From assembly GCA_016748015.1 (NCBI GenBank), contig JAAOMT010000512.1, positions 902,719 through 966,718 on the forward strand: a stretch of 64,000 bases of DNA. The letters are read 5' to 3'. This document shows positions 14,219 to 55,390 of this stretch, piece after piece (position 1 is the stretch's first letter; every line of letters begins with the position of its first letter). The notes beneath the pieces are model-generated. The model had not been told where the DNA came from and made no database searches. It saw only the letters and a list, made by a program, of their open reading frames with translations. The DNA is from Geosiphon pyriformis uo1. Its lineage: Eukaryota > Fungi > Glomeromycota. A program made the position numbers and the translations under genes.

Positions 14219-14222
14219 TTAA

Positions 14223-15181: not shown

Positions 15182-15183
15182 TT

Positions 15184-31201: not shown

Positions 31202-33403
31202 TCAATTTGCACGAGGCAGATGGTCTCCCAACCGACGTCCCGTAGATCCCCACCAAAAAACAGGCTGCGGATTTCCACCACTGTTTCTCATGTTTATGCT
31301 GATCACTTTCGTGCTATCAACAGCAATAATACACCATCTTAGTTCACACTCAATATTGGGAACCTTCCCGAAATCATCTATGGTATGATTTTCAATTTCA
31401 AGTGCAATCAATCCTGAAGGGCTCCATGACTCGATATTAGCTGTCAAATTGAATTCTTGATTTGTTGGAGGAAAATGAAAAGAAGCAGAAAGGACAAACC
31501 CGGGAAATAGGGTAATTCCAGAATCAAATCGTGCTATCCATTCTATATCTGGTCCAAGTCTCAGCTTAAGCGTGCCCAGTCTAATAAAGATGAATCGATT
31601 ATCAGGATGAAAATAGCCGAGCTCTTGGGGAATACCTGTCAAGAACCAGATTATATAGTATCTAATATTTAAAAATTTGAAAAAACTCGGTAAATTTTCT
31701 AGTTTTTAATATTAAAGAGAAGGGATCAAATTCTTTAAAATTTACTTTTCATTAATGTTCAACGTTGGATTCTCTTTGCGCTTCTTACCCGTGGTATGAA
31801 TCGTGGCTGAAAATCCGTACTCATTTCTACATTCGAATTTTACGTATGTATCCGGCACCCGAAATCCAGAACTATCCACGAGTGACCCAAAAACTTGATA
31901 ATTGTCAGTTTTCAAAGGCTTCTTGAATTTCATTCGTCGATAAATAACATTGGGGGATTTTAAACGAGTGCATCCTGTCATGAGCACCTTTGGATATTTT
32001 ACAAGTAAATTGTCAAGCTCTTGTCTAATTGTGTCATCAAGAATTTCGTAAATTGGTGCTAATACACGTTTTATAATACACCATTGCCATGGCCTCTTGG
32101 GAATATTTGTAAACCATCTCTCTAGGTGTCTAGAAAAAGGTTAGATCGGAATGAATTTATAATGTAAGAAAATGAAAGCGATTAAATCATACTCTCTGTC
32201 AATGACATCTCCTCCAGAACTAACTAAATAAGAAGCGTTCAAAGGTCTTATTGTATCCTCCCACGTCAAGAAAAGTGGATCACACTTCACAAGTTCATCT
32301 GGAAAATTTCAGGTTTAGTAAGGTGGAAAAATATGAAGTGAAGAGGAAGTAAAAAATTAATGAAAAAATCCTAAAATACCATATATAGTCATTTCTTCTG
32401 ACTCTCTTAACAACCATTCAATCGATCGAGCTCTCTCATTTGAATAGGAATCAATGTTCAAAAAATCGACCTCACATTTTCTTTCCAATTTATTTCCAAG
32501 AATAACTGTTTTACACCACCAATGTCCATACTTTTGAAAAACCTCAGTTAATTGCTCAAAAGGATTATCATCAAGTAATGCACTGGTTATATCACTTTTT
32601 AATCCGTCAGAAGGTATAATATCTGATGGCTCAACCTCAATTAATACTTGCTGACATAAAGCTGAGCAATGAACATAGCCAGCTGGGGATTGATCAAAAA
32701 GAGGATTGAATGAAGGATTTGGCTCAAAGTCCAGGAATGGCTTCAATTTTTCAGGACTGGCTGATTCATTATTGAGTTCAATTCCTTGAGCAGACATGAA
32801 AGAATCTCGTGGTGTTGAAAAGCCATTAAATTCAACGCTTTGCTTGCCAATATACAGAATATTTGTAAGTTTCCCCGAATGATCAGGGTTAAAGTCAAAT
32901 GCAGGTAAAAATGCTTCCTCGACTCCGTATTTAGTAATCACCATTCCATGATTAAGTAAATAATTTGTGTTCAATTCTTTGAAGTCCGTCGAAAAACTTG
33001 ATGTGCATATACTTCGTCGAGGTTGGTTGGCGATAAGGAAAGTATTATCATTATGATCAGAAGCTATTCGAATTATAAGTGCTCGTGAACTCCCCTTTTC
33101 TTTCACATCGTTTGTCACTATTTTTTTCTTTTCTTTTTGATTTTCGAACACTTCAGGTTCATCTAAATGATAGATGACAATATTCGGATCAGATTTTCGT
33201 AATTTTGAAATTGATACGTTTGATGAGTTGGAATGGATAGATGGAACTGCTTTGTGTTGATTCAATCGCCGAACACTTTTATGATGTTCAACATTTTTCT
33301 GTGACCCGATACTTGAAGGTCGACTATGCAATACAGTATCGCTGGGCCATTTCAAAGGTCCGCGAGTATTATCAGTCTCTAAAATTTGTGCCATATTGGA
33401 CAT
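31202..33403 (-). CDS. Standalone MACPF-like domain protein (Glomeromycota family), 4 exons
   Basis: Exons 33403-32380, 32298-32193, 32129-31746 and 31661-31202 join in frame via GT-AG introns. Motifs FQKYGHWWCKTVILGNKL and W...LAPIYEIL; paralogous to the C-half of 44920-49484. Confidence 0.75.
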
Positions 33404-36400
33404 TATTGATTTACGAGAATTTTATAAAATAGTTGGCGCTTTATGATTAATTGCTCGTAAAAACCCACTACTTTCAGTATCTTACACGAAATTTTCAATC
33501 AGATTTTTCGATATCTCTACACAATTAGGAAATAATGAGAATTAGCAATGCCGGTATTATTTGGAAAAGTGAATTTTTCACTTTAACCTTTGTTTGACGA
33601 TTATCATTACAGGGCAAACGATATGGGTAGAAAGGGAAAATGCATACCATGGTCTGTCAGGTAGTTCTGTTGTCTTTGTAAATGAAAAAGATAACACGGA
33701 TGTTTTAAATCTTTAACCCGTGTAGTCTGATCAGGTTAGACTGAGAAATGGAAGATTCATAAATTTTGGATGCATATTTGTTTGTTCAACCTTTTTCATT
33801 TTCAAAGTTCACGTTGATCGGATGGATTATTTAATGCTAAAAAGCACGTGTCATTAAGACTATATCGTTCGAAAAAATCTAGATACATTTTTTAGATTAT
33901 TTACGAATTGTGTTTGAAAATAAACAAGCTTTTCGAAGAAAATTCCATGTGGAATTATGAGGAACTTAAAAATAAATGCGGCAAGTTAACCAAGAATTAT
34001 CGAATTGTGTACTGGAAATAAGCTTCACCTGGTGCCCCTGAAAAATAAGCATTAGAATTAATCATTAGAATTAATTTATCTTTAGGTTGTTTGATAAATT
34101 TATCAAAATGTATTCATTATTTTATATATATTTTTAATCTAAATAATGTTTTTATAGTCAACTTTTAATTAATTAATTAATTTTTTGCTTATAAATTTTT
34201 AATTTTTATTACTATTGATCTAATTATTATTATTATTATTATTTTGATAAATACATGTAATACTGTTTTATAACAAAAAAAATAGTATTATAAAAATTTA
34301 ATAATAATTAATAAGGCCAAATTCTGTTTTAATTATTTTATTTGATAAAATAAAATTTTATTTTTTTTCATTCCTGGTTAAAAATGTACTTAATTAAGTT
34401 TGTTTTAATTATAATCTTAAGCAAAAAATATTTTTAATAAATAAAATATTAGTTATAAATATATTAATTATAAATATTTATTTATGAATACAAATAGAAA
34501 AATCAATAAGGTTATCCAAGTTTTAAATAATTGACAAAATTAATTAATAATTTTTTTTTTACTCTAAATTCCCAATTCTGAAATATCAAAACAATTAATT
34601 AATAAATATTTATTTTATTTATCAATTTAAGCTATGTATAAACAATATTTATCTTTTTATTATGCATAAGAAATTCATATTAACTTGAAAAATAACATAA
34701 AATTTATAAAAATTTAAAAGATTAAAAATAATTATTATATATAAAATAAAAACTTTTTATTGTAATTTATATAAATAGAAGCCATAATATCTAATATAAA
34801 AATAAAGTAGAATAAGAATTGAAAGAATTATAAAAAATGGGTATTAAATTATTTAAGAGGTTAATAAAAAATTTTAAATAACAAAAAAATAATAATTAAA
34901 GCTGATTATGAAACTAAAAATGTTAATTAAGATGACTTACTTAATATGAAATATTTAATAGATATCGATTGTGCCGAATTTTATTTTATGTATTTAAAAC
35001 AGCTGAGATTATAAAAAACAATGTTTAATTGTTAAATAAATCAATCAATCTAATTTCTTGTATAAAAATAGTTTCAAGTAACTATTTTACAATTTACTTA
35101 GATAATATTATTACAAAAACAATAATGATGTTTGTTTAATGACGAGAGAATCAATTTAGGTTCCATTTATTGTTTTTGTAATTTTCAATTTATTTACTAC
35201 TGTTATTATTTTAATAATTATAACCAACTATTTATTTATTAAAAGTTATTTTTTTTTGAAACAATTATGAACCTTTTTTAGTCAAGACTAGCTTATCAAA
35301 TAAATTAAACCAAACCAATTTTTCACCGATATCTTTGAAAATTTTTATTTTTAATAATTTATACTTTTATATTATAACATAATTTATATAAATTTTTTCT
35401 TTGGTTTATAAATATTTTTAAAAAATTTAAATAAATAAAAAAAAAAGCTTTTTCTTAAAAAAGAACTTAATATGCTTATTTATTGTACCAAAAAAAAAAA
35501 ACACTATTAATTTATTATGTTGAAAATTTTTTACCAATAAAATTTTTTTTTGCTTTATATAAGAATTATTATTTATACAGGTGCTTTTGATAAATTGTCA
35601 AAAGATATGTTTATCATAAACTCGTATAAAATATTTGAAAAAAGATGTCATGTACGTATGAAAATTTCAAACCACTATATGTTATAAACAAAAACATAAA
35701 TTCTGCTAAAATTTAATATTAAAAAGTATATGCCGCGATAAGCAGAATCAATTTTTAAATAAGTAAATAAATAAATAAATAATTAGAGATTGATTTATGT
35801 CAAATACCTATTAAAATGCACAGAAATTAAGATTGCATATTAAAGTGCTAGAATAAAAACAATACATTTAATGATTGACTTTATACTTTATACTTTTATA
35901 TGAAAATTTTAAGTATAAAGCATAAAATCAAAAATTTTATTTTTTTTATTTTTTACAAAGAAACTTGATTTCAATCATATAATAATAAACCAAAAAAATT
36001 CAATTTAAAACATAAAATTTTCTTTTATAAAAGCTGCACTTTTTTTTTAAAAAATAATAAAATTTGATAAAATTTTGAAAATTTTTTTTTTTTTTTAAAT
36101 AAATCAAATCTTTAACAGATTAATATATATTGAAACAAAATAGGTTTAATGAAAAAACTATTTTATGAAATATTCAATCAAAATTTAAATTAAAAAGAAA
36201 GAATTTTTAATATCAAGTTATTTTATTTTAATTCAAACGATTACTGTTTATAATTTTTTGTAAAAACACAAAAAATAATTAAAATTAAAAAAAATGAGAG
36301 AAATAAAGAAAGAGAGAGAGAGAGATATATATATATATAAAATCCAGAATAATTTTTTTTAAAAATCAGAAATTAGGTTTCAATTTTTTATAATAAATTA

Positions 36401-37128
36401 ATATATATAATTTAGTTTTATTTCAAAATTTCTATTTTTTTTTTAATGCGTTTTGATCTGATTTAAAAAATGAATTTATAATAATGTCATTTATTTGAAA
36501 ATTATTAATGTTTCAGAATTAATTTGTAAAGAAATAATTTTAAATTTTTATTTTATTTTTAAAAAGAATCAATATTTTTATTTCCCCCTAGGTCAATTTG
36601 AAAAAGTGTATAATCAATGAGAAAAAAAATTAATAATAATATTATTATTACGATTTCTTTATAAACAAAAAACTAGCTAAAAATTCTTAAAAATCATATT
36701 TAGCTAAACATTTTTAAAATTCTAAACCCGTTTCAGGAATTTACAAAATTAGAAAAGGTTAAGGCCGGCTCTGTGTTTTTAAAAATGATTTTCACTGCAT
36801 AATATCAGTTCAAAGCTTTTAATTCCCTCAATGCATAAACTTCTGTGGATATTTTGGCAAGCTGGAAAGTTATTATGCTCCTATTCTTTTTTGATCGTTA
36901 CTCTATATAGTTTGTTTTTCTTCAAGAGCAAGCTCGTCGTACTTTGCCTCCATTTTTTGTTAAATCTAATGTTTGGAGCAATTAAAAATGTTCTAGAAGC
37001 CAGACGGCTTTTTAATATTTATTTGACTTTTTAATCCTGAGTTTACAAAGTGTATTATGAAAAATTTTTACATAAATGTCTTAAAGTTAACAAATTAAAT
37101 ATTTTGATTTGACCAAGCACTATTATAG

Positions 37129-38512
37129 TTAATTAAATATTTTTATAGGAAGGCGTACTGGCTTTACTTCAAATTTCTTGATTTTACTTTCTTCAAACCC
37201 CAAAATCTGTGCAATCATTTGAGCCATTGCTGAATGAATTTTCGTTGTTAGATGAAGTTTATCCCAAAAATAATGAGTTTCTGGATTTTGACATATGGTT
37301 GGTGGTTGTGGGTTTAAATCGAGACATTCGTCCTCGAAATTGTCGACACCATCAGTTACTGCTTTTGTCCTTTGATAAATATCCAAAAATTCATGATATG
37401 GGAACCGATAAACAATGGCGTCTGGATGACTTTGCTCAAAACGAGTAGCGGCTTCAAAAACTTTTTCAGTGTGTGTTGTTGAACGAAAGTGTGCCAGCTG
37501 TACAACTCTCCGTCGGTAAGTTTTGGCGATAGGTAATCTGGAAAGGTCAAAAAATCCCACTATTATAAATGCCCTAATACCATGTTCATAAAGTTTCGGC
37601 CAAGTGCCTGCAATTCGCTCAACTACTTCTTCTGGTTTAGCTTTAAGTGCAGTCTGTTCGTAGTCATTTCCTGCCAGAAAAGTCTAAAGAAATTGAAAAT
37701 GTTGAAGAACGTATTTGAAAAAGAAAGGGTACACTTTAATGATAAAAGGTTTAAATACTGACGGAAACGATCGTTTTGTTGATATTTTTTTTATCTTTTT
37801 GTGAGGCCAAGTATGTATCGACTTGTTGCACTAATCCTGGAATTTTTGTTATGCCATCTCCTGTTATGCCTGTTTACAAAAATGATTGTAGGTTAATAAG
37901 GGATAAATATTAAAAATATTTAACCAGTTACATTATGGATCGATAAAAAACTAAAAATTACCTTGGATAAAATTATTGCTATATAAAATTCATTTCCCGA
38001 AAAATTAAGGCTTCGATTAGCTAGAAGCTCATTGAAATGATCATATAAAAAAAAATTCGATATCCAGAAACTTACTCGGATGTAGCACCACCAAAAGCAA
38101 AGTTCATTAATCTCATGTTGTAAACCTTAGTAAGGTATTCTGACCAAACAGGACCATTTGAAAATCTGCCCTTAAAATACAAATTTGAAGGAGGATACTT
38201 CTTTTTTGTCAAAGCATAAACATTTCCACTGTCTTTTTAGATTTAGAGAAATAGAAATCTCATTCAGTACCAAGCCAGATTGGGTAATCATTATATTTTG
38301 AAAGAGCACATTTTTAAACGGAAAATATCCCACTTGCCTGATGACGAGTCACCAAATGTTACCAAAGTATTGTACCTTGGTCCTTGCATATAGCACATGC
38401 ATACTGTCCAAAGTTCTTTGACCGCTACAGGTGGTTCCCATGCTATTGAAGTTGGCAGTGAGATAAAAATTGCAACAGGAACTAGGATCGTTAATGAAAG
38501 TTTCAATTTCAT
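37129..38512 (-). CDS. Secreted GDSL/SGNH esterase-lipase, multi-exon
   Basis: Signal peptide; FGDSSSDSGN (across intron 1), GRFSNGPVWSEYL, NFAFGGAT, AGNDY, FWDKLH. Confidence 0.9.
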
Positions 38513-40790
38513 AATAGTTATAATTGTTCTTGTGATTCGTAACTTCTAAAAAATTTTCTAATGAGAGAAAAAAATCCAAGTCGTATCTCTTATTCATTTT
38601 AAAAGATATTTAAATGGAAAAATATTTATTTTGTAAGCGTAATTCAATTTTTGAAACGTTTGAATCTTTAATTTTTTTTCCCACAGTAATTGTCCAAAAA
38701 GGCAAAGGACATCATGAAACGAGACTAATGATTCGACAAGGTGATGAATATTAGCATTATATGAAGCCATATTGCTTTGATGAAGCGATTCTTTGCCGAC
38801 AAACAAAACAAAACAAAACCATACCAAACCAAACAAAGGAAAGCAAAGCAAAGTAAAAATTTTATCAATTTCCACTTAAAATCTCTTCAATTTGATCTTG
38901 GAATAACTTGAATGAAACATGATTTTGTTTTTAATGATCGTTTTTAATTTTGAAGATTTTTCGATTACGTTGAACGCGGGCATGAGAACTTTAGGAGAGG
39001 GGGGGGGGGAGAGGATGAGTATACTCAAAATTAGCAGCGGGATCACGATAAAGCAAACATGTAATATCTGATATTAAGGAAGTGGATCAACATATCCTGC
39101 CTAATCAAGAAAATCTTTGACAAAAATTTTAGGAAATTTTTAATTTTGAAAAATGTGGAGAAAATTCAATATTTGAAATTTTTTTTTTAAATTAAGATTA
39201 TTTCCGGTGATAGATCATATTATACCGAAATATTTTCCATAAATGAGTAAAGTGAAATATTTATAATAAATAATCACATCCATAGATCGGGATTGACATA
39301 TAAATTAGCATTCGATCGTCAAAATCAGCAATCAATGATCAAAGAGGGGTATTGGGGGAAAAAAGTTTTCACTTGTAGATTTTTAAGACTTTAAAAATTT
39401 CTAGTTCACAATGACGTGGTAAAAAAAACGTTTTGTCTTGTTTTTCGAGTGCGGGCAATATTTAAATTTTCTCACCGTAAGAGTCATTGATGTGATTGGT
39501 TCGAATCAGTTATTTAAGAATACACGCGTTCATCAACCCGGAATAATGAGATCATCTTTTTATCGGTGATTTAAAGCGAGAAACGATGATTCGACAATCA
39601 AACTATCACCTAAATCAATCTTTCCCGTTCTTTTGATCTGATATATGCTTTTTTTTTTTGTTTAAAATTTTCCCATATTAACAGATTTAACGGGAAATTA
39701 AAATCCATCAATTTTTCCCCCTTAAATCAGATAGGCTTGGAAAATAGAAAGAAGGATTTTGAGTTAGGATAAATTGATTAAAAGATGTTTTTGATAAAAT
39801 ATTTGTGTAAATTTAATACTCATTTCTATAAACAATTAAAAATTAGTAAATATTAAAAAAAGTTTTCAAATGAAAGCCCGAGTTATTTTCCAGGTTAGCT
39901 TTACTAAAATTATTTTTATTTTCAATTTTCAAACTTTACAATAAAACACTGTTTATTCCCTTTGAACATTATTGATAACAGAGGATGAAATTTTTAATAA
40001 ATTAATGTAAAATGAAATATGAAAAATTTAGTATTTAAATCTTAAAGGTCCTAACAATTTCATAAATTTTTTTTTTGTTTTATTCAAAATGAAAAAGAAT
40101 CTGAATTGATGTGAAAATATATAATAGGTTCAACACTAAAAATTACGAAAATCGAAAACTTTTAGAACCTTCAAATTTCTATGGAAAAATAATGCTAGTA
40201 AACATAAGGATCCAATTCATTAAATTTAAAAATAAAATTTTAAAATTCGGGTTAGTATATGATTTCATAAAAATTGCTAGGGAAACTGAAAGAATATTGA
40301 TCAAAAATATTTATTAAATTTTGAAGTAAGAATTTTTTGGTATGCTCTACCTATTTCCGAAAGTGTTTATTCAACGGAACTTTAATTAATAATAATTTGA
40401 GTTACTATACTTTTTTGTTTTTTCCTTGGAGATTTGGAATTAAAGAATTTAAAAAAATTATTGATTTTGAAAAATGTTATTTCAGAAAATTCGCGAGGTT
40501 TCCAAGATCTCATTAATAATTTTCAAAAAAGGCAATTTTAAAATTTGCTTTCTATGGAGTCGCTCAAATTCATCAGGAAATTAATAGTTTGACTAAAAAT
40601 CCCTTTACCTTTATTATACTACTTAAAGAAATGTCCCTATTAGTATCCCTGAAGAGGTTTTTGAAGGTAAAAAATTTTGGAGAGAGCTGAGCGGGACAGG
40701 AGCTTTGAAAAACCCGTAATCACGACGTAAATGGAAACATGCATATCACTGGACTTGATAATGTTCCTGTAATTGAAGGAAATGCAAGCG

Positions 40791-40800
40791 ATGATGATAT

Positions 40801-40831
<31 letters not shown>

Positions 40832-40832
40832 A
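40791..40832. repeat. (GAT)n microsatellite within a probable decayed coding remnant
   Basis: About 13 GAT units with one interruption. Confidence 0.85.
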
Positions 40833-43105
40833 TATTCAATTTCTCTTTCACAAGTTTAAATTTCTTTATGAAGGCTAACTGTGACTGTTGAAAGAAACAT
40901 GAATATATAATTTTAGATGGCTTATATTGATTGATCATACTCACACGATGTTAAGTATACTTTCTGGAAGTAGAACATACAAGTTTTAAATGACAATACT
41001 CCTTATTCCATCACCACAGAAAAATCTCGCTTATGTCGTCCCGAGGATATCTTTGATGAGGCCCTAGAGATGTGACCAATGAGATTTCAGGAGTTGAAAG
41101 GGAGGACTCGGGAGAACCCAAAGGAGATACAGTTTAACAATTCCACCTTGAAAAAATAAATTACAGAAAGACGATCAATAGAATTGTGAAGACGAGCAAA
41201 GACAGAATATAAAATAAAGCAAAAATACACTTTCCACAAACTCTTTTTTTTTTGCATGCTCCCGAAAAATTTGCTCTCCACTACTTTGTTTTACTTCGTC
41301 ATCACTGTCAGTTATCGAATGAGAACGGTTTAAGACATGCAGTGTTATTTGATATAACTAATCGTTTAAAAAAGCTGGTTTTAATTTTTGGAAACCTTAA
41401 TAAAATGAGCTTTTATTTATCATCTTCAACTATGATATTTATAGTAAATCCTACTTTTTTACAAACTTAAAAGTAGTAAATTTGGGAAACTTTATTTTTG
41501 AATTCAAAGTAAGATTGTTTATTTATTTTGAACGAATTTTTAAATTTATGTAAAATTGACATTATATTGTGTTTTTTAAATTTTTATAAAGTGCTAAAGG
41601 TCTCATTTTTAAAAATTTTCCCAACCTATAAAAATTTCTTATTTTAAAAGACAACTATTTTTTTATTAAAATTAAAAATAAAAATAAAATTCAATTTCAT
41701 TATACAAATTATTAGCTTAAATAATCAAAAGACTTCACTATTAAATTTTAGAGACTTGAAAATAATTCTCAATTTATCTTGATCGAAATATCAAATTTTT
41801 CTCTTAAAAATTAGGGTCTAATTCACGTTCAATATTGATGCAGGATATACGAAAATAGACTCTTTGTGAATGGGAAAGATTATTATTTGTGAATCTAAAA
41901 ATTTCTTGGCAGTTAATGGTTCCATGCAAAATATTAAGATGTCACGAGTTTACACTCCTTAAAAAAATCCAAAAGTTCTCAAGTAAAATAACATCATTCT
42001 ATAAAGATGTTTAAAAAATTAATTAACTAAAGAATTTTCAGCACGATATAAATATATAAACTAATAAATAAATAAATAAATAAATAAATTTTTACAGACA
42101 TAGAACAGAAAAAGGTAATAGTTTTAAGAAACGGTAACAACACAATTTTTTAAACTTAATTTTTTATTTATTTCATCCTAAATTTTCGAAAATTCCCAAC
42201 TCTTAAAGGAATTGTCTTTTAAATGCTATTTTTAAGTGACTAATCAACAAATTTCAGGATGATCAATGAAATGAAACATCGAATATTTCCAAAAATCTAC
42301 TCGATGTAGATTTTCTATAAAGACCTTTGTTGGTAATGCCTAGCTTATCATCAAAAAACAAGATGAAGGTATCATTACCTTTGTAGCCTTTGTTTTTAGC
42401 TCGAAGATTCTAATCTTCATTACATATGGTTTTTCAGATTATTTAAGGTCAAAAAAAGAGTTAATCAAATGCATCAAAGACATTCCTTACAATCTTATTT
42501 GTTCATTTTATGTGAAAAGAAAAGGCTTAGACGATGCATATCAATAAGTTTAATGAAATAATATATATAGTAATAACATTCTTGATCCAATTTTATTTTT
42601 AGAATTGACAACTATCACTATTCCTTTTAATGGTTAAAATCTTGATTTTCAAAAAGTATTGGAACTAGATCAAAACATCTAATTTCAAAAATGTTCAATT
42701 GAGATGTTTGTTTAGGCATAAAATGAAATAATACATAGGAACTAAATAAATAAATAAATGAGATTCCATCTTTACGAGACAGTTGCGCTTCTGCGTTTAA
42801 TCATAATTTCATTGACGCTATAACATTGCTCGTTTGAACAGGATTATCGGTCTTGCTGGTTAGTAATATTCGTAGCTTTTGAAGTCCTCAGAGTTTCAAA
42901 AAAAATTGTATTCAAAGTACTTCAACTATTCAAATTTTACGTCAAGTTGAAATATATGAACTTCAGAAACTAAGACCATATTCCCTTAATTTAACATACG
43001 AGATAATACAATTCAAAGAAACAACCTTTCTCGTCATCGTCATCTTTTCCAAGAAAGATTAACTAAATCTTTTGAATTTTTTAGAAATCCCAAACCAGCA
43101 ATAAA

Positions 43106-43599
43106 ATGACTAAAGTCAACTTCTCATTAACTTTTTACACGGTATTAAAAATTCTTATAAAAGAAACTTTTTAAAATTTTGTTTAGCTCTAAAATTCTAT
43201 TTTTTTTTTTTTACCGAATAGCTTCTCTTTATCCTGCTTGGATTTACCATTTTCCAAAAAACCTTTGCCTCGAATGTTGACGTGGCTTTATACAAAGATG
43301 AATCCCAAGAAGGTCAAAATTGGGCAATGACTTTAAAAACATCTAAATGTGTTGACCTTCCGGATTGGATCAATGGGAATAAGACAGAGTCATGTTATAC
43401 AAATGGTTGCTTTTGGGCTTTTACAAATCAAGGCTGTAAAGGACGAAAATTCAGGGTATGCCCAAGGACTTGCAATTTTTTCGGTGGCCTTTCAGATACT
43501 GTTAATTCTATTAGGAAAAACGTAAGAACTAGTTATTCTGTCAAATTCACCAAACATGTTCATGGACAGAGGAAAAAGATTAAAAGAAAAAATTACTAA
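43106..43599 (+). CDS. Small secreted Cys-containing beta/gamma-crystallin-like protein (~137 aa)
   Basis: Exon 43106-43141, GT-AG intron, exon from 43222. Signal peptide MTKVNFSLTFYTLLFILLGFTIFQKTFA; two Greek-key-like motifs LYKDESQEG...NKTES and AFTNQGCKG...DTVNSIR. Confidence 0.7.
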
Positions 43600-44919
43600 G
43601 AAATATTAAACTTTCGGAACATTTGTCTTTTCTTTAAAATATTGTAGTTTTAGCCCGACAATATGTATATTAGTATGTAATATAAAGAGTTCAATCATTT
43701 TTTTTTTAATTCGGGGGGGTTTTTTTTTTGAAAAATGGGATAAATTTTTATCCGAAATAACGGACAAAAAATGAGCCGATCGCGACTACGATTTTGTTAA
43801 CCAGTTTATGTAGTAAAGACTTTAACTTCCGAAGTAGTCACCATCAGATGTTTTGAATTATCTTAAAATTATAATTTCACAAATGAACGAATAGCATTAA
43901 TTTTAAATGAGCGAATCATGGTTACATGTATTTATAAACTCAATAATTATCGCATTTTAAAAAGTGATTTTCCTTTAGATGTAAAAAAAAAAGAATGGAA
44001 GAATATTATTATATCCAAGCGATACTTAAAGTTTATCCCCGCAATAAATCTTTTATTTTTAAAATTTTTAAATTTTCGATTTTCAGAAAACGAAAAAATA
44101 TATAAATTCTATTCTTTGTCTCGATGCAAAAATAAAAATTTTCATTACGAGTAAGTGAATGGGTATTTTGATTTAAACATTTTTTCTGATATACTTCAAG
44201 AAATGGCATTTTATAGAATTATTATTTTTTGGAAAAACGCCTAGCCGTAACACAGTAAATATAAAAAAGTTGATTTGTTTTATTTTAATCTTTAAAAAAT
44301 TCCTTGGTTCAAAATTCAATTTGTTTTTCGTCTTTTACAAAAATCTGCAACTAACTTTACCGTTTTATTCCATTTTATCCCTTTGACAAGATAAATTAAT
44401 ACTATTTAGTCAATAAAAGTTTCAATTCTAATGGATAATATTAATTGGAATAGTTTTTTATTCCTTCTAGTAATGCCAAAAACAAATCTCGCAGGTTTTT
44501 ATGGACTGACACATTTTTCTCTTTGAAACAAGTAATTTTTTGTTGTTGAATATTTCAACAGATGGCAATAAGTTTTTTTCAAGAGCATCGAAAAATTTCA
44601 AGCAATTCTTTTTCCTTATACCAAGATCGAAAGCACTCTCATTCATCTCTCGATTTATTTCCAAAAAACTTAAATTTGGTATTCACAAAAAGATTTTATT
44701 TACTTAATGATTAAGAAAAACACACCAATTGGAAAGAAAATTTTACATTGACCAATTTTACATTTTCTAATCCTAATTGTTAATTTTTTTACTTTGGTCA
44801 AATAACCTATGAAACTATTTCCATAACTGATTTAAAAAAAAATTTATATAGGTCATGGATTGATCTATCCAAAAACATATAACAGTGCCATTTGAGAAAG
44901 GATTCCGTTAAAATTTTGC

Positions 44920-47900
44920 TCATTCAAGCGTCCGGAATCCATATACTTTACCAAAATAGCGGGATTTTATAAAGCACCAATGAACGTTGAGATTAAGCGC
45001 TTCATTTTCGGATTCCAAAGAAAACTTTTCACATTCAACACGTCTTTGAATTTCCAAATTTAAACTTTTTGTATCCCAAGATCGATAAGCAATAGAAAAC
45101 TCTGGACTTTTACCTATCATTGGATACCGAAGGTTCAATGCGAGTGAATATTCCATAGCTGCTGATTCGTTTGTTGGTCTGAGTGGTTCTTCAATTGGAA
45201 GGGATATTCGTAGACTGCTTTCTCTAATTTTATACTTTTCGCTGGACTGGCCATGAAAGAATTTGTATTCTCGAAGTTTTGGATTAGAATATCCTATCGT
45301 CGATGGTACTCCGATCAAAAACCAATTAAAATGATATTTCCTAATCGAAGAGACATAATTGCTAGTTTATGAAATCTTGAGGTTTATTGTTCTAAAATGA
45401 TCAACTTTAAATTAAGGTCTCTTACTTTGCATTTTGCTCATCAGAATTCGTGTAATTTTCTAGTCGCCATGAAACTGAAAAGCCAAACTCATCTTGTAAG
45501 GAAAATAGTATTTGGAGACCATGTTCATTTACTGGACCTGATTGAGAGGTGATAGATCCGAAAAGTTGGTATTGAGTGCTTTTCAGCGGGCGCTCAAAAA
45601 GGATCCTTTTGTATTCCTTTTCGATATCGTTCAAGGCTTCTGATCCTTGCATGAGAATTCGCTCTTCTGGCTTACACAAATCGTTGAATCTTTCTTGTTG
45701 ATTCAACTCAAAAAGTTCGTATAGTGGAGCTATTGTTCGATCGATAATTCTCCATTCAGAATCAATTTGAGGCCAGTCTGAAACATTTCTTTTTCAAGCA
45801 ATCATTTTTTAAGACGAATGATGTTATTATCGCTAATTTAAATATGAAATATAAATTAATAAATATTTTCAGCAACAAACCTGATATCGTTTGGATATCC
45901 ATCCAGCGTCATTAAATATGAAGAGTCAAAAGGTACAATTAACGTTTCCCATTTTTTCAGAGCTTCTTTAACTCTGTCATCTCCGTCAACTGTGAAATTT
46001 CCAAAATTTGAATTATAAACAGACCTCGCAAATTTTGATGAGCTAGCCATTAAAAAAATTATTAGAAATACCCTTTTCGAAAGTGAATTCATCTCTATTA
46101 GAGTTCCGATCAGATTTTGCGGGGTTTCGAACGATTCGTCGCAGTTTATCACCGAGCACAAATTTCTTGCACCACCAATGCCCATAAGTCTTAAAAATTT
46201 CATTGAATTCTTCAAATGGATGCATATCATCCAAAGCATCGCCTACTTTTGAAATCAGTTCTGGTGAGACCTCTATATCATTGGGCATCAATGTAAATCT
46301 CGCTTTTTCAAACGAAAATTCACAAAAAACGTCAGAAGTTGGCGATAAATCGAACAGAGGATGATAAAGTTTTTGAGAGTGCAAGTTCGATTGGAATGAC
46401 TCGAATATTTTTATAGGAGAACTTTGGTTGAGGTTCGAGCTTTCTTGTTGTAAGTGACTCGATAACAAAAAAGATTCACTATTATTTGGACTTATGTGAA
46501 GTGCTAATCTTTTTGAGTCATTGAATTCCAATTTTGCCGAACGAATTCTCAATGTTGATTTGGAAGCCTGCAAAATTTTATCAGGCTGGATAACTATGCC
46601 AGTCTCAAGACATGAAAGATTTTCGGATTTCCAAAAATTAGGATGTTTGCAATTTTTGAAAACACTTGATCCGTTTTCCAAACCCATCAGGAATGAGTTC
46701 CAATCATTCAGTGTTTTATTTGTTGACTTGTCGCTTTGATAGACGATATTAGAATCTTTATAATTTGCTTTGCCATCTTTCTTTGTTGAACTTTCAGGAT
46801 GCCTTTGACTAAGGGCTCTTTGAGACTCTTCCTCTGTTAAGTGAAGTTCAATCAATAAAAATAATTAATACCATTATTGAAATAAATTTAATGTGCTTAC
46901 TTATATTAAAAACATTCAAATTTAAATAATAATAAATAATAAGTTTACCATTTGTAGAAAATCCAGATTTTGTTATTAATCGGCTTCTATATCTTGCCAT
47001 ATCTCGTATAGTATCTTGTGTCTCTTCAGATTCAAGGCTTTTTTCACGGATAGGTTGATTTAGGTCACAATTATCGCGAGCAGCAATAACGGTTCGTTGA
47101 AGTTCTTCTGCACTATCACGACAAGACGGATCATATTGCCAATTTTTTTTAATCATTTCCTGAATACATTGAGGCGTATGCTTTTTGATTATAGGGCGCT
47201 GTCCGTTAATCACATCAGATCGCACGTGAATAGGATCTGTATTATTAAGAGGTCTTTCTCCCGAAATAATTTCACAGGAAATGATGGCAAAGCTGTATAT
47301 ATCACTGCACTTAGTGTGAGGATCCCCCTTGCAGATCTCGGGTGCGAGATACTCAAGAACACCATAAATATTACTAGACCGTGGAGAGTAATCGGCACGA
47401 CGACAAAATCCGAGATCAGAAATGACAACTTTTAAGGGGTTTGTTTTCAAAATAAGGATATTTCCAGGATGTAGGTCTCCATGCACTAGCCCTGATTCAT
47501 GTATGAATCTTAGGCCACCAGTGATTTGAAAAAGAATATGAAGGAACACGTCCCAAGTGAAAATATCTTCGTTCAACTTGAGAAAGGCTCTGAGGTCCCC
47601 GTGTTCGGCAAATGGTAAAACCATAACAAATTTATTAGTTGTAATATCTTTTGTGATTCCATAGCATTGAAGGATGTATTTACAAGAGGCACAACGAAGA
47701 TGGGCAATAAGCTATTTCAATGCATTGTCTAGTGTTAGAAAAGAAAAGGGAAGAATAAAAATCAGAAAATTCTATTAAATGAAATTACCTCAATTGAATT
47801 AACGTATTCAATGTTTTGGCTATTATTAAGACATTTCAAAGCAACTCTCGTAACCCCAGTTCTCTCATACTTTTGTTTTTCTCTGTCCCAAAATAAAATT

Positions 47901-49484
47901 TTGCCTCTCTCCCATGTACCTTCTTTAACAACACCAAATCCTCCCGTTCCCACCATTTCCAAAAATTTGATCTCGTCGGGAGAAATCCATTCCAGGCAGC
48001 TTCTACTGCTCTCAGAAATTGACTGTGAATGGTATATATAACTATCAATATTATTATTTTCGCTATTCCATGTTCCCCAAAGGTTTGAAAATCGTGAAGA
48101 TTCACAAGATCTACACCAAAGTGGATCTTTTAATCTGCGATAGCATTCTGGACATTTTGGCAAACCAGCTTCAAATACATTATTATCATTGTTTTCGCTT
48201 TTATCAGTATCACAAAATGCACATATAGGATATCCACTAATGATTGTATACAAGTTACCACATTTAAAACACTTAAATTCATCTGAAAGCTGGTCAAAGA
48301 AAGCTTCAAAATCTAAGAGCTCTCCTTTAGAATTATCCGGACATTTTAATCCTCGACTTTGAAATCGCAAAATGAAATGTTCTAAATTATTTTGATCCTG
48401 TAAAGTGAAGTCAAGGGCATTCAACTCAAGAAAATCACTTTGATAACATAAGTTATTTGCTCCCGCTGCTTTTAAATAGAGTTCAAATGCTTTTTGGATG
48501 TTTTTTGTGGTTCCTCATCCATTTTGATAACACCATCCTAGGTTATATTGTGCATTTTGATTTCCCGCCTCTGCTGTTTTTAAATAGAATTGAAATGTTT
48601 CTTCTAAATTTTTCACTATTTCCCATCCCTTTCGATGATACGTTCCAATACTGTGGACTCGGATTTCCCTCTTTTTCCAGATCTTCCGTTATTTCTAATC
48701 GAGTTCGATGATATACTCTAAGAGCGATTTGTCCAAGTAAATCTCCCGCCTCTGCTGCTTTTGAATAAAGTTCAAATGCTTTTCCCTCGTTTATCGTTGT
48801 TCCTAATCCATCTACATAACAACTTGCAAGATTGTATTTTGCCTCTAAATGTCCCGCCTCTGCTGCTTTTCAATAAAGTTCAAATGCTTTTCCCTCGTTT
48901 ATCGTTGTTCCTAATCCATGTACATAACAACTTGCAAGATTATTTTGTGCATCTAAATGTCCCGCCTCTGCAGCTTTTGAATAAAGTTCAAACGCTTTTT
49001 CTGAATCTTCTGTCGTTCCTCTTCCATTTAAATAACAAAGTGGAAGATTATTTTGTGCATCTAAATTTCTCGCCTCTGCAGCTTTTGAATAAAGTTCAAA
49101 TGCTTTTCCTCGATCTTGTGAAGTACCAATTCCATCAAGATAACAATGACCTGAGAAGAATTGTCCAAAAGAATCTTTTGCATTCGCTGCTTTCTGATAT
49201 TCTAAAAATGCTTTTTTTAAATTAGGAATAGTTCCAATTCCATGTTCTAAAGAAAAGCCGAGCAAAATATGGTCTATTGAATGCTTTGAATTTTTATTTT
49301 TCAAATGATTGAATAAGTCTTCAGGTTTTTTCTGATTGCGTTCAAGATATTTTTTCACTAATTCAGCAACTTTTGAATATTTTCCAACTGGAAAAAAGGC
49401 TAAACTTTCTTTGAAGACAAACAATGTTCCTTCAAGCCAGTCGAGGAGTGGAGTTGCATTTTCAATTGATGAAGTTGAAGACAT
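44920..49484 (-). pseudogene. Sel1 repeats - Cys-rich linker - tyrosine-kinase-like kinase - MACPF-like domain fusion; lesions confined to the Sel1 array
   Basis: Exons 49484-47789, 47711-46949, 46833-46072, 45989-45881, 45788-45426 and 45340-44920 splice in frame. Motifs KAFELYSKAAEAG repeats, GTGGFG, VALK, HGDLHPGN, DLG, APE, FKTYGHWWCKKFVLGDKL. Stops at 48870-72 and 48515-17 plus a frameshift between them. Confidence 0.8.
48430..49300 (-). repeat. Sel1-like repeat array (108-bp units)
   Basis: Near-identical DNA units start at ~48764 and ~48872 (AATAAAGTTCAAATGCTTTTCCCTCGTTTATCGTTGTTCCTAATCCAT), with further units at ~48980 and ~49088. Confidence 0.9.
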
Positions 49485-51899
49485 GATTTGAATATTTTGT
49501 ATGGGTAAAGAAGGATTTTTAAAGAGTTCGTCTTGGTAATAAATAAGGATTTCAATCTATAATCACATTCTCGAAAAGGTTAGGGTTCAAAAATAGACGC
49601 TTACTTTATTCGCTCATTTATCTGGAACTGTTAAAAGGGATCATTCTTTTATTGCTATTGTTAAATGAAAACACTTTTGATTGGTGATTGCTGGTTTCAA
49701 TAGCTCATTGATAAATTTCTAAATGCATAAGGTTGCAGAGGCCCTAGCTGCTTCCAAAAATATTTTTAATAAAAAGTAGATCACTCTTACAGGAATTAAG
49801 GTCCTCAGTTGAATAAATTTATATTGTATTTCAACGAGTCGATAAAACCGACTTAATTGAAGCATTATTTAGAGATGCAAGATTTAGTTTTTCATGTTCT
49901 TTTAAATTAAACTCTAATGATATCAGAATTCATTTTTTGCTTTAGCTTAATAGATCATTTTTATTTAACAGAGTTTATATAATAACCAAACACTCGATTT
50001 CCAAAAATATAAAATTTATATGAAAATAAATTTTACTTAATATATTTCAATTTAATAAACATAATTTTGCATCATTACCAATTAATCAATTGTTTATTTT
50101 AATTATTGATTTCTTTTTCACTTTCCAGAAAATAGATCAATTAATCAATGCACTTTTCTTTAGAAAATTTTTACTTTGTTAAAATCTATTTCTTTTAATT
50201 ATGTATTAATTAAAAACACAAAAATATTCAAATATTTAAATAATAAACAATTAATAGATTTAAAATCTAAACACTTTTAAACTTTTTCAGCAATATCAGA
50301 TGGAATAAAAAAAATATTCATCACAAAAAATTGATTTTGAAACTGGAATTTTGCATGTTAAAAATTAGATTATTAAGTTTTATTTTGGTACCAAAGTTGT
50401 GCATAAAATATTAAAATTTCAAATACAAGTTGAAAAATTTTTGTTATTTTCACTGTGTTATAGGCTGATATCTGTTGAAAATTAGATTTTGAAAACAATT
50501 CAAATTAATATCTGATTAGATTAATATTCAGATAAATTTATAATTTCAAATATTAAAAATCAAATTCAAACATTTATTTAAATTATATTTAATCTTTCAG
50601 AAAACCAATGTTAAAAATAAAAATAAATTTCAAAAATAAAAAATTAGAAGCAATTGTCGCTTTTTAAGACTATGTGTTGGTTTGTTATTTTTAAAATTTA
50701 TAGTTAAATTTTATATATGTATATAATAGATATACTAATTTATGAAACATTAAAAATAGTTCACTCTAATTCAGTAACCCACTTTATATAATTAAACTTT
50801 TATTAATTCAAAAAATTTTTTATATTTTTTTATATTTTTTGTTAATTCAAGTCAATTTTTAATTCTGTATTAGTGTAAAAAGTAATCTACATTATTAATA
50901 TAAATTTTTTTAAATTTAATAGATTTTTTCTTTAATAAAATATTTCATTCAATTAAAATAATTAAAAAACATAGTTATGTATGTTTTTTTTAATGCACAA
51001 GGACAAATACACGAAAGTGATACAATGTAGGAATTTTAAGTTTTACATATAAAAATGCAAGGTAAAATAATTTTATAATTAAAATCTATTTGTTTAATAT
51101 TTTTGTTTGAGCATTTTTATCAAATATATAAAATAATATTTGTGTTTTAAATAAATTTTGATATGTTAAAAATGTTTTAAAGCTATTCAGTATTTTACAT
51201 TATTAATCAAAGTATTAAAACTAATAAAATAAAAATAATTACTTTATAACATATTTTTAAATATTTTTTCGAATAAAATTAAAAAAAAACAACTTAATAT
51301 AAATTTTCAATAGATTATTTATATACTAGATTTATGTTTGTAAATAGAAGATATTACTTTTGTTTAAAAAAATAATGAAAATTATTAAAATTATTATAGA
51401 ATTATCTGAAATATTATATTAGTTGATGATATTTTGCAATTTTAGGCTAAAAGTGTCAATTAGTTTAGACTTGAAACATTCCCTCATGTAAATTGTTTGA
51501 ACGGGTAGAGATCGTCCGGGATTTTAGACTGAAAGTTCTGAAAACACACATTCCCTTGATCCGGAACTCAAACATGAGATTTTTTCGCGTACCAATCTAA
51601 ATGAATTCTAAGGTTACAGATGGCCTTAACCGCTTCCAAAAATTATTTCTTTATATCAAAGAAACAAAGGACAAATATCCTTAATTAGTGATAGCCTTCA
51701 TAACAGGTTTAAAGTAATTCCTTGACTCATATATAGCAGAAGAAAATTTATTTTAGCTACTACATTAAAAAAATACGATTACAGTTTCTATCAAGATTTT
51801 TTAATGAAAAGTTAATGAGATTGAACTGATTAATTATATTATTTAATTAATTAAATAACTATTTTAAAAATAAAAGTTAATAATTAAATTATATTAAAA

Positions 51900-52245
51900 A
51901 CAATTCGAAATTTTTACTTATAATCCAAGAAACACTAAATTAAATATTTTTTGATAAAATTGAATATTTTTGTGCCAATTAAAAAAGAATTTTTTTTATA
52001 AATAATTGGAAATTTGAAAATACATATAGTTTATTTTTGAAAATGGCAACTTTCTCTCTTTCAATAAAATATATCTTAGCTTAATAACTTACAATAGAAT
52101 TATCTTCCACTTGATAATTTAATAATATCTTTTATATTTGCATTTCTTTAAAATTTACTTTTATCTCACTATAAATTAATAACTTTATAAATGATTAGCT
52201 ACCAATTTTAGTAGACTGATTAGTTTATTCTTATCTTAGGCCAGA
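51900..52245 (+). repeat. Degenerate solo-LTR fragment related to the Gypsy LTRs
   Basis: AACTTTCTCTCTTTCAATAAAATATATCTTA and TGATTAGCTACCAATTTTAGTAGACTG match LTR segments at 14616-14645 and 23298-23324, in the same order. Confidence 0.55.
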
Positions 52246-53068
52246 GAAATTGTTACTAGCTGAAACTTCCTAATGTCTCCGAACATTTAAACAAGGAATT
52301 TTTCCAAAAAAATCAAAAAATCAAAGAATAGTGTGTTGAATTTCAAATAAATTCCCTAGCAGGAATCATTAACTCTACTATGAAATAAACATCCAAATTT
52401 TGCTTGTGCTAATATTAGCATTGAAATTTTACTTATCAAAGATGCCTTTAACTACAATTTTTACATGCTAAATTTAAGCTTATATTCTTTTCAAGCATTA
52501 ACAAACTTTCTTTTAAAAAAGTTGCAATTTTGTAATTAGACTTGATACAAATTAATTTTTCTGAAAGTATGTCAAATTTTTTTTAACTTGAATTCTAAAA
52601 ATCTATATATTCTCTTGTCAAAACCTCTATTATAGGTTTTAAAATAGTTATTACGAAGTGTCAGCTAAATCTAATATTTTAGATTCTTTCTTGCTTAGCT
52701 TATAAATTAAATGTAAACTTATTAATTGAACCAAATTTAATCAAAGTATTAACAGAAAGACACTTTTAAAAAATATTATTCATTTGCACAGTTAAAAAGA
52801 CAACTTCTACAGACTGTTTAGGATGAATATCTGGTACGAGTTTAGTTGATACATCGCATCTCAATAGGGATGAGGTTATTTCACAATGACGTCGGAGGCT
52901 GCATAATTCATTTAAAATTTCCTGTTTATAGGAATTAAGAAGTACATGTATAACGAATTTTGGTAAGTATAAAGTAACTTGGTCTATCTGACGGCCTTAA
53001 TATTTTTAAAAACGTCCTAATTTTTATTTTTGCTGGTTAGCAGCTAAAAGACATTCTTTATCTTAATC

Positions 53069-55390
53069 ATGACGAATGTTTCTGAGCTTGAAGTTGAGGT
53101 TCAAGTTAATAATGAAATACCAGTGCTTTGCAAGTTGGAGTCAGATGCAAAATTGTGCAAAGTTCGAGAGAATTTTAATAAAAACAATAATATTCTTATG
53201 GGTGAAGAAATGTTCTTCATGAAGGGTAGTGCTAGGGTACAAAAGAAAGATGAGGGGGGCAAGGATGTCCAAGAAATTATTAAGGAAAGCACTTTGAAAA
53301 TTACGGGCTCGAGAGCACCAGACTGGGATTTCATAATAAACAGTTTAAAATTCGAGTATGGAATCAACTTTTTGAAGGAAGGGGCCTGTCGAGCTACCAA
53401 TAAGGCATTTAAATTCAAAAAAATTCCAAGTAAGCCTTTAGCTCAACCGGAAATACTCGAAGAAACGGTTACATGTAAAAATCAAAGTGACAAATTTGTT
53501 ATGAAAAATTTCCTTAATGAAGTAAATATAGAAGCAAGTCTACCATGGTAAGAGTACAATTTAAAAGATCTTGAAAATTTTTAACAAGCACAGTCTGAAT
53601 TTTGAGAACTTTTTCGAACATTAACCATTCTTTTTAAGGTCCTCCACATCGTTAGGTTTGGGAGTTTCCATTGATTCTAAAAAAGAAGTCCACCAAACCG
53701 TTGCAAAGTCCGAAACATTTTCCATTTCAAAAAGAATCCACTCATTTATTGATATGTCTGAAGATGAGGTCGAACCAACACCTGAATTTGTATCAGCTGT
53801 GGAAAAAGCTTTTATTGGTGAAAACAAAAAGAAGAACCTGGAAGATGTCCTAAAGGACTTTGGTCCATATTGGTGTAAAAGGATTGCCCTTGGGGGCAAG
53901 TTAATAACAGAAGAAAAAAAAGAGCAAAAGGTTGAAGGACAAAATAAAGGCAAAGAAACCCTTCTAAAAGGGAGTATGAAGGTGGGAGGGTCTAACATAG
54001 GCGCAGAGTCTGGGCCTTCTAAAACCACAACAAATTCAAATTCTTCATCTGAAGAAAGCCTTCGTTATTGGATGTATGGCGGTGAGGAAAGAAATTATCA
54101 AGAAAGTGGAATGAAGGGTAAATGACTTGGGGAAAATTTTCCATAATTTTGATAAAACATGATTATAATATATTTATTTAAAGTATATCATTAATTTTTA
54201 GGTTGGCTCAATTCGATTTATGAACCTAAAAATTGGTCGGCAGTACAATATGACAATGTCCACTGCATTTTCGAACTCTTGCCCGAGGAAACACATAATA
54301 GAATTAGGGAAGCTTTTGAAAAACGAATCGAATCTTCACGTGTTGAATCTATCGAATTTAAAATGGATTTATCCGTGGCGAATTATATTCATGAGCTGCC
54401 TAAAGATGTAAAAATATCAAAAGATCATCAAGTTTTTGTAACAGTAATGAACGAAAAACTCTCCGACTCAGACTTTGCCCCCAGGGTTCATTATCATGAC
54501 GAGAATAGTAGACCAGTCATTCAGCTTTATAGACTGGGCAAACTTGAAAAAGGGCGAAAATATAAAAAGTTCTCGCTAAAGCTTGGGTGGATAGTTTTGG
54601 GAACTTCAAATATGGTGGATTTGATTAATTCAAATCAATCCACACTGTTTATTAAATCTGCAGAGGAGACAATCACTAATAATCGGGCAGAAATTCTCTA
54701 TATTCCTGATCCTAATGATAGTCTTATCGTAACTTGTGTGTCCCGTTCTAAGGACAATCAAAATAATCCCAGAGATTGCTCTGTTGTAACAGGAACTCAT
54801 TTCGTGTACAACAATAAAAAAATGGAAGCCTGTACTTTTTGTTATGACCTCAAAAACTTTTCTTTGAATACAGTGAATCTTGATATTTATAATTTTGCCC
54901 TCGATAACAGCAAACCAAGTTGCTGATGTTTCCAAAATGCCTATGAATGTCTCAGTCAATTATAGGTAATGTTTTTCTTATTCAGAAACTTAGTGAAATT
55001 GGGCTAATTTTTTTTAAAATTCTTTTTTCATATCGTAGCACTATCAGACGTAATGGTAACGGTAAGAGCGATTCTCAATTTGGGCACACAGAAATTAGCA
55101 AGGGGGTACTAGGAAAACTAATACCCAATAGACTAATTCCCAATGCACTACGATTTGAAGTGTCGTTTGATGAATATAAAAATTTGTTGAAAAAACCCGT
55201 AATGTTTCAACCAATTTTCATCAGTCTCATCTTTATGGACTGTGTGTGTGGAGATAACTGTGCGCCTGGTTTCTTCAGCATCAATCCAAAAAGTGCAATT
55301 TATCGATCATTGAAGAAATGTTCTCTCAGTAGTGGGAAAATAGCCTATTTTTGTCCCTCAACCAATAGTCAATTGGAAAGTGAAAGTTGA
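53069..55390 (+). CDS. Ubiquitin-like N-terminus plus MACPF-like domain protein, multi-exon
   Basis: Exons 53069-53547, 53639-54117, 54202-~54965 and 55039-55390. Motifs VEPTPEFVSAVEKA, LKDFGPYWCKRIALGGKL, MYGGE, WLNSIYEPKNW...CIFELL. Frame junction near 54870-54925 unresolved. Confidence 0.75.

Follow-up and report, generated by a model that had tools for sequence, protein, structure and literature searches.

A cluster of three paralogous genes with a predicted MACPF core and differing N-terminal regions in Geosiphon pyriformis

We analysed a stretch of 64,000 nucleotides, hereafter the window, from the AT-rich and intron-containing 128 Mb genome of Geosiphon pyriformis (Glomeromycota, Archaeosporales), located at positions 902719-966718 of contig C714. 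Three genes lying within 24 kb of the window share a core that resembles the MACPF domain. Gene 1 (31202..33403, minus strand) corresponds to the public model P0003, a protein of 657 residues named 'hypothetical protein G9A89_019144'. Gene 2 (44920..49484, minus strand) is a copy of a Sel1-CxxC-TKL kinase family joined to a MACPF and beta-sandwich module, the upstream Sel1 part being interrupted by stop codons. Gene 3 (53069..55390, plus strand) comprises a possible ubiquitin-like (Ubl-like) N-terminus, a MACPF domain and a DUF7431 domain. Gene 1 was studied as the spliced public model, and genes 2 and 3 were studied exon by exon.

The initial annotation had proposed a core common to the three genes, and this was borne out at the positions it gave, the exon translations being significantly similar in blastp comparisons. 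Genes 1 and 2 are 44% identical over 77 residues (E 9e-20), and their downstream exon pair is 35% identical (E 6e-12). Gene 3 matches the exon translations of genes 1 and 2 with 28-32% identity (E about 1e-7). A profile of 481 positions, A1, was built from the regions of 26 relatives and was used for the genome search, for the PDB profile search and for AlphaFold2 modelling. This profile covers gene 1 from position 2 to 478 and gene 2 from position 2 to 455, each in four coding blocks whose boundaries fall at similar profile positions, while gene 3 is covered at positions 100-156 and 222-399. On the strength of these alignments, we consider the three genes to be true paralogues, gene 3 being the most distant.

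The canonical MACPF signature is Y/W-G-T/S-H-F/Y-x6-G-G. The corresponding sequence is YGHWWCKTVILGN in gene 1 (32492-32530, minus strand), where it was aligned to the signature of pleurotolysin B (PlyB) and ends in N instead of the final G. It is YGHWWCKKFVLGD in gene 2 (46148-46186, minus strand), with D at this last position, and FGPYWCKRIALGG in gene 3 (53859-53897, plus strand), which retains the GG pair. The spacing and the Y/F-G..W-x6-G pattern are kept in all three genes, with the T/S-H pair swapped for HW, HW and PY in genes 1, 2 and 3, respectively. A looser fungal signature, Y/F-G-x2-F/Y-x6-G-G, has been described (PMC9505663) and, of the three genes, is matched by gene 3 alone. The second motif noted by the initial annotation, W...(P/C)(I/L)(Y/F)E(I/L), was located at 32042-32089 in gene 1, at 45713-45754 in gene 2 and at 54204-54278 in gene 3.

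With regard to domain profiles, Pfam scans covered the exon pieces of the three genes and ten neighbouring open reading frames (ORFs), which is part of the window. The Pfam model PF22693 (MACPF_1, 'Fungal MACPF-like domain'; cut-off 27.5 bits) matched the signature exon of gene 3, taken as one exon alone, with an E-value of 4e-5 and 23.8 bits, which is below the cut-off. The same model scored 12.1 bits (E 0.16) on gene 1 and gave no match in the scan of the exons of gene 2. Among the relatives that were scanned, MACPF_1 exceeds its cut-off in several proteins, and the general MACPF model (PF01823) is weak or sub-threshold in most, with one protein, P0031, above the cut-off at 22.9 bits. A search of the whole genome with MACPF_1 gave no match, and the control genomes were equally silent, which makes this result uninformative. 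Against solved structures, the profile A1 matched PlyB chains with E-values of 3.4e-9 to 2e-7, in an alignment of about 160 residues that takes in the signature as well as the W...P.Y..L region.

An AlphaFold2 model of residues 140-657 of P0003, computed from the A1 alignment, reached a pLDDT of 81.6 and a pTM of 0.79. It exhibits long strands at model residues 42-56, 104-117 and 156-172, the last of which carries the signature, and shorter strands at 226-236 and 255-263. Helix-containing segments at 57-103 and 173-225 occupy the positions of the first and second transmembrane hairpin regions (TMH1 and TMH2). A bent four-stranded sheet with two helical clusters is therefore present in the predicted model, and the MACPF assignment made by the initial annotation stands both at the level of sequence profiles (PlyB, E 3.4e-9) and at that of the fold. 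Based on the model, the module is best described as a real MACPF domain with a predicted four-stranded bent sheet, two helical clusters and a partial signature. PlyB is the closest solved relative by both profile and model comparison. MPEG1, TgPLP1 and GNIP1Aa are further structural relatives of the model, and Astrotactin-2 is also among the matches.

The TMH regions have family medians of 42 residues for TMH1 and 45 residues for TMH2, and TMH2 of gene 3 comprises 57 residues, of which 47% are G, S, T, N or Q. Segments of 42-57 residues are typical of pore-forming MACPF proteins. On the C-terminal side of the MACPF domain, the model exhibits two beta-sandwich domains, which correspond to the region of the Pfam family DUF7431 (PF24209; cut-off 27 bits). 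These domains are weakly similar to lectins or to tailspike knobs, the lectin-like matches being borderline. In the ESM Atlas, the cluster closest to the gene 1 model (TM 0.64, 434 residues aligned) belongs to the Mucoromycota and combines MACPF_1 with DUF7431, and a Basidiomycota cluster of the same Atlas joins MACPF_1 to a jacalin lectin.

The coding blocks of gene 1 lie at 32360-33403, 32144-32308, 31745-32140 and 31205-31705 on the minus strand. Its product has a low-complexity N-terminus of 146 residues, a MACPF domain at residues 140-420 and two beta-sandwiches at residues of about 423-621, and the homology of the relatives to P0003 spans residues of about 147-640. The description of gene 1 as standalone has to be amended for this low-complexity N-terminal extension.

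Gene 2 is the most composite of the three genes. Pfam identified Sel1 repeats (E 4.5e-30, at 48870-49484) and a Tyr/Ser-Thr kinase domain (E 3.6e-30). The Sel1 array, made of units of 108 nucleotides, extends over 48453..49220 (minus strand). An in-frame TGA is found at 48870-48872 in the fourth Sel1 unit, where sister units have TCA. Further along, the reading frame shifts near 48600-48700, and another in-frame TGA follows at 48515-48517. Since each of the two stops falls within a well-formed Sel1 repeat, it is unlikely that introns remove both. As a consequence of the two TGAs and the frame change, the Sel1, kinase and MACPF parts do not form one ORF in this assembly. Downstream of the second stop, the kinase frame has no ATG until two codons before the G-loop. 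The following minus-strand exon (47789..48424) encodes a Cys-rich segment with four CxxC pairs (48104-48271), the G-loop GTGGFGVV (47927-47950) and the VALK motif (47834-47845). A GT..AG intron of 77 nucleotides (47712-47788, minus strand) splits the kinase domain, and the C-lobe exon (46949..47711, minus strand) contains HGDLHPGN (47460-47483), DLG (47409-47417) and APE (47337-47345). All catalytic motifs of a kinase, namely the G-loop, VALK, HGD..N, DLG and APE, are hence present.

The kinase exon is connected to the linker, MACPF domain and C-terminal beta-sandwiches (44920..46833, minus strand; open blocks at about 46080-46833, about 45895-45999, 45425-45793 and 44923-45366) by an inferred intron of 115 nucleotides (46834..46948, minus strand). 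The donor codon and phase of this intron are those of three paralogous Sel1-kinase genes, and in its 3' part it shares 85% identity with the last intron of the paralogue L004. Over the interval from about 49583 to about 46917, gene 2 and the three paralogues are 80-96% similar in nucleotide sequence, and this similarity ends inside the intron. The kinase paralogues have their GT donor after '...STKG', matching gene 2 in both codon and phase, and go on to a short last exon (DEEFE..., stop). The homologous acceptor in gene 2 opens with 'EEESQ...', from which the reading frame stays open right into the MACPF module. The gene structure is thus good evidence for a single transcription unit that comprises both kinase and MACPF. 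Gene 2 is a young chimera, in which a copy of the kinase family landed upstream of a MACPF gene and its conserved last intron was read through. Of the proposed fusion of Sel1 repeats and kinase to MACPF, the kinase-MACPF junction is therefore upheld by gene structure, and the Sel1 part is contradicted, in this assembly, by the two TGAs and the frame change.

The kinase family from which this copy derives is abundant. Genome copy numbers were obtained with six-frame protein and profile searches and are lower bounds; the Cys-rich/kinase exon of gene 2 gave at least 154 six-frame genome matches out of 324 candidates. Among the Sel1-CxxC-TKL kinase copies, which are represented in the window at 47762-48424 and elsewhere by, for example, L003, L004 and L005, many share 65-76% identity and one 96-97%; many of them carry stop codons or are otherwise decayed. 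This pattern suggests a family undergoing rapid birth, gene conversion and decay.

Gene 3 has coding blocks at 53069-53551, 53658-54125, 54195-54926 and 54947-55390 on the plus strand. The DUF7431 domain was matched at 54279..54926 (plus strand) with 32.4 bits, above the cut-off, and is the counterpart of the beta-sandwiches that the family has at the C-terminus. The 85 N-terminal residues (53069..53323, plus strand), for which a ubiquitin-like fold had been claimed, are a candidate beta-grasp domain and are conserved in a paralogue, L001, to which the first exon is 31% identical. No Pfam or PDB sequence match was obtained for these first residues, about 85 in number. A weak pointer comes from ESM features, with 5 of 30 hits going to Rad60-SLD/ubiquitin clusters at a score of 0.92. 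An AlphaFold2 prediction of the first exon from two sequences had a pLDDT of 34.9, which is unusable for a fold search, and its order of elements, b-b-a-b-a-b, fits a beta-grasp. A ubiquitin-like N-terminus is thus a plausible suggestion, in keeping with the predicted order of elements. The remainder of exon 1 was matched neither by A1 nor by the Pfam MACPF_1 model, and we can only guess that it is the start of the MACPF domain.

None of the three genes exhibits a hydrophobic, signal-peptide-like stretch in its first 35 residues, as judged by a simple hydropathy check and not by a dedicated predictor, in agreement with the initial annotation. The lack of signal peptides, together with the fusion to kinase-type modules, supports a cytosolic location of the three proteins. 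MACPF proteins are known as secreted or granule-stored weapons.

Across the genome, the family comprises the three genes, one paralogue of gene 3 and one decayed fragment, all on contig C714. The paralogue (L001:3872-6392, C714:678871-681391) is apparently intact and lies 223 kb upstream. It was matched at C714:679.6-680.8 kb, is 31-37% identical to gene 3, possesses the same N-terminal region and the signature YGPFWCQRIVLGG, and has a DUF7431 match above the cut-off. Three of the four intact copies are crowded into 24 kb, out of a genome of 128 Mb, which indicates that the family copies arose by local duplication. The fragment is a decayed signature exon of the gene 3 type (L002:6339-6494, C714:978338-978493), about 12 kb past the end of the window, with 52% identity, two in-frame stops and a deletion of 6 residues.

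Relatives were sought by an exhaustive phmmer search with the core exon of gene 2 against 1.84 billion representatives. This search yielded 32 proteins at E <= 1e-3, the best being 34% identical. All 30 named matches are from Glomeromycota, namely Gigaspora, Dentiscutata, Racocetra, Cetraspora, Scutellospora, Acaulospora, Entrophospora and Ambispora. No Rhizophagus or Glomus protein is among these 30, and no sensitive search aimed at those two genera was made. One relative is labelled 'MACPF domain-containing protein' in UniProt. The core architecture of MACPF_1 and DUF7431 is already catalogued in Pfam, though uncharacterised, and the three genes belong to a fast-evolving branch of this fungal MACPF_1/DUF7431 family that is, within the available sampling, confined to Glomeromycota. 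A tree was computed for the core region, without the gene 3 exon, which the domain and occupancy filters removed, and without P0021, a short match of 100 residues. In this tree, genes 1 and 2 group with Ambispora proteins (SH-aLRT 80), in line with taxonomy. A clade of genes 1 and 2 is not rejected (p-AU 0.64), and the kinase-fused proteins of Gigasporaceae form a separate clade (SH-aLRT 99).

The relatives exhibit a wide range of domain combinations. A kinase is combined with two MACPF modules in P0009 and P0033 of Gigaspora margarita, with one in P0007, P0018 and P0029, and with MACPF and Sel1 in P0012. A partial kinase, MACPF and leucine-rich repeats (LRRs) are found in P0035 of G. rosea, and MACPF with LRRs in P0015 and P0020. 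P0036 and P0027 comprise MACPF, a weak MLKL_N match, a kinase and Sel1 repeats. In P0025 of Dentiscutata heterogama, MACPF is joined to a SLOG domain of the circularly permuted YpsA type (cpYpsA, E 7.5e-24), and P0002 consists of three tandem MACPF modules. The MLKL_N matches, present in three Gigaspora proteins, are sub-threshold (18.6-20.9 bits, cut-off 27), and a profile of two of these MLKL_N-like regions gave nothing relevant against the PDB. One ESM Atlas cluster combines a fungal MACPF domain with GTPase domains of the Ras/Roc/Arf type. SLOG and Ras/Roc/Arf GTPase partners are typical of conflict or signalling systems. Fusions with signalling domains thus recur in assemblies that are independent of one another. 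Different N-terminal modules were acquired by fusion at the level of exons. We found no published description of MACPF proteins in Glomeromycota, nor of MACPF fusions to kinase, LRR or SLOG domains.

The surroundings of the three genes contain two lipase genes and mobile-element sequences. A GDSL-lipase-like gene (weak Pfam match; 37129-38875, minus strand) lies between genes 1 and 2, and a class-3 lipase gene (PF01764, E 2.4e-11; 58396-59570, minus strand) lies downstream of gene 3. This neighbourhood of lipases and MACPF genes might be meaningful or due to chance. Just downstream of gene 3, an ORF of 345 residues (56603-57640, minus strand) is of the Tc1/mariner type, with HTH_Tnp_Tc3_2 and DDE_3 domains. 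At about 12000-28200, a block richer in GC (0.29-0.40, against about 0.15-0.30 around it) carries many ORFs on both strands and is probably retroelement sequence; two large ORFs within it (24929-26179 and 27280-28116) gave no Pfam match. The gene-bearing blocks are separated by stretches with a GC content of 0.10-0.18 (2001-4000, 10001-12000, 28001-30000, 34001-36000 and 50001-52000).

What could these proteins do? Based on their sequences and fusions, we favour the view that the family consists of regulated membrane-attacking effectors of some kind, and we regard this as an even call. In such a system, the beta-sandwich pair would dock the protein on a target membrane or glycan, and the MACPF domain would oligomerise and damage or perforate the target membrane. 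Until triggered by a signal, this activity would be restrained by the modules at the N-terminus or fused to the protein (kinase, Sel1, LRR, SLOG and possibly Ubl). The system would have its role in conflict or defence, and its target could be a compartment of the fungus itself or intracellular bacteria. The variety of signalling partners in the relatives is the main circumstantial support for a regulated intracellular effector. The modular control postulated by the initial annotation draws circumstantial support from the homologues in other Glomeromycota, in which the module is fused to kinase, Sel1, LRR, SLOG and sub-threshold MLKL_N regions. In the window itself, the Sel1 part of gene 2 is broken by stops and the Ubl of gene 3 is unproven. 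A more specific version, in which a cytosolic perforin-type executioner is gated in cis by kinase, Sel1/LRR or SLOG modules, is built on analogy with necroptosis and NLR-HeLo systems (NLR, NOD-like receptor), and could serve abortive cell death in a coenocyte or the control of intracellular bacteria or symbiosomes. We consider this version unlikely, and a link to endosymbiont control is speculation.

Several observations weigh against the effector interpretation. The second G of the signature is replaced by N in gene 1 and D in gene 2, and is present only in gene 3. Charged residues make up 26-32% of the TMH regions, TMH1 of gene 1 contains 8 prolines in 47 residues, and the period-2 hydrophobicity of these regions has a z of about 0 relative to shuffled sequences, in a test that included no pore-forming positive control. 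Several MACPF proteins do not form pores. The broken sensor part of gene 2 implies that at least this copy may be decaying. Some of the fused models in relatives come from draft single-nucleus assemblies and could be annotation artefacts, although kinase fusions are present also in the better assemblies of G. margarita and G. rosea.

Among the alternatives, the one that survives best, though we find it doubtful, is that of stored anti-feedant or antimicrobial toxins similar to PlyB. These would be constitutive and act on wounding or eating, with lectin-like C-termini binding the glycans or lipids of grazers or microbes, and the kinase fusions would be secondary or non-functional. Such toxins would account for PlyB being the closest solved relative, for the standalone organisation of gene 1 and its Ambispora relatives, and for the pairing of MACPF_1 with a jacalin lectin in Basidiomycota. 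Fungal MACPF proteins, moreover, commonly have no recognised signal peptide, and some are intracellular (PMC9505663), which fits stored toxins as well. However, a passive stored toxin would hardly account for the fusions to kinase, LRR, SLOG and Sel1, which occur repeatedly and in different orders in several genera, and the lectin-like matches on which the binding role would depend are borderline. No aegerolysin partner (PF06355) was found either genome-wide or among the scanned ORFs of the window, which counts weakly against a two-component toxin because the control search was silent too.

A non-lytic MACPF family acting in signalling, trafficking or development, like astrotactin, Torso-like or the plant CAD1/NSL1-type proteins, seems rather improbable; the fusions would then be ordinary signalling proteins. 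What keeps this explanation alive is the nature of the TMH regions, which are hydrophilic and charged, hold many prolines in TMH1 of gene 1 and give no alternation signal. The degenerate GG of genes 1 and 2 and the presence of Astrotactin-2 among the structural matches point the same way, as does the very large expansion of the Sel1-TKL kinase family. Conversely, the closest proteins by sequence and fold (PlyB, MPEG1, TgPLP1 and GNIP1Aa) are true pore formers, the lengths of the TMH regions are those typical of pore-forming MACPFs, the stretch at the TMH2 position of gene 3 is rich in Gly, Ser and Thr, and the alternation test had no positive control. Finally, we think it very unlikely that the locus is mostly evolutionary debris, that is, a lineage-specific family in a transposon-rich region that was duplicated, shuffled with the kinase family and lost, with little function for some copies and for gene 2 above all: the stops and frame change in the Sel1 array, the decayed fragment 12 kb beyond the window, the many decayed kinase copies genome-wide, and the mariner transposase and retroelement in the window would agree with it, but gene 2 has kept its whole kinase domain and about 480 codons of its MACPF module open, although stops accumulate quickly at roughly 30% GC, gene 1, gene 3 and L001 are intact, and the module is conserved across orders of Glomeromycota.

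If the proteins are regulated effectors, the known fungal executioners of cell death and immunity, which include HeLo/MLKL-like, gasdermin-like and patatin proteins and a few others, would be joined by cytosolic MACPFs that are repeatedly fused to kinases, to repeat sensors and to a nucleotide-sensor domain. These MACPFs would also offer a first molecular entry point to the way in which conflicts are managed by arbuscular mycorrhizal fungi, which are coenocytic, often contain endobacteria and cannot be handled genetically. If they are ordinary stored toxins or non-lytic proteins, the finding is a well-annotated lineage-specific MACPF cluster. In addition, the window reveals, at base-pair level, the probable origin of a fusion, in which the last intron of an expanding kinase family was reused to lead into a neighbouring effector gene.

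The family can be compared with several known systems. The N-terminal half of gene 2 is typical of the Sel1-repeat TKL kinase expansion of Glomeromycota, being 65-97% identical to many copies and having the same intron positions, but the short terminal exon of these genes (DEEFE...stop) is replaced in gene 2 by an open frame into MACPF. The family defined by PF22693 and PF24209 is similar through gene 3, which exceeds the cut-off for DUF7431 and matches MACPF_1 with an E-value of 4e-5, and through the nearest Atlas clusters, from Mucoromycota, which carry both domains. In contrast, genes 1 and 2 have diverged too far to be recognised by the Pfam models, and the fusions to kinase, Sel1, LRR and SLOG are outside the family description. 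Pleurotolysin B and erylysin B, fungal two-component pore formers (PDB 4OEJ, 4V2T and 9DO6), resemble the Geosiphon proteins in the MACPF domain, by profile and fold. The differences are that the two C-terminal beta-sandwiches are unaligned to the C-terminal part of PlyB (the alignment covered model residues 1-281), that kinase, Sel1 and possible Ubl N-terminal modules are absent from PlyB, that the signature is partly kept in the Geosiphon genes and that no aegerolysin partner was found, the last being a weak negative. Membership of the NLR/HET/HeLo group was rejected, as no NACHT/NB-ARC (NLR), HET or HeLo domain was present in the Pfam-scanned pieces of the three genes and the ten neighbouring ORFs. 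The RIPK3-MLKL, NLR-HeLo/HET-S and gasdermin (HET-Q1) systems nevertheless offer an analogy, and only that, in their common logic of a sensor or signalling module connected to a cytosolic membrane-permeabilising executioner. Whereas these systems use a four-helix bundle or a gasdermin, the executioner here would be of the MACPF beta-pore type, and the coupling would take place in cis, on one chain.

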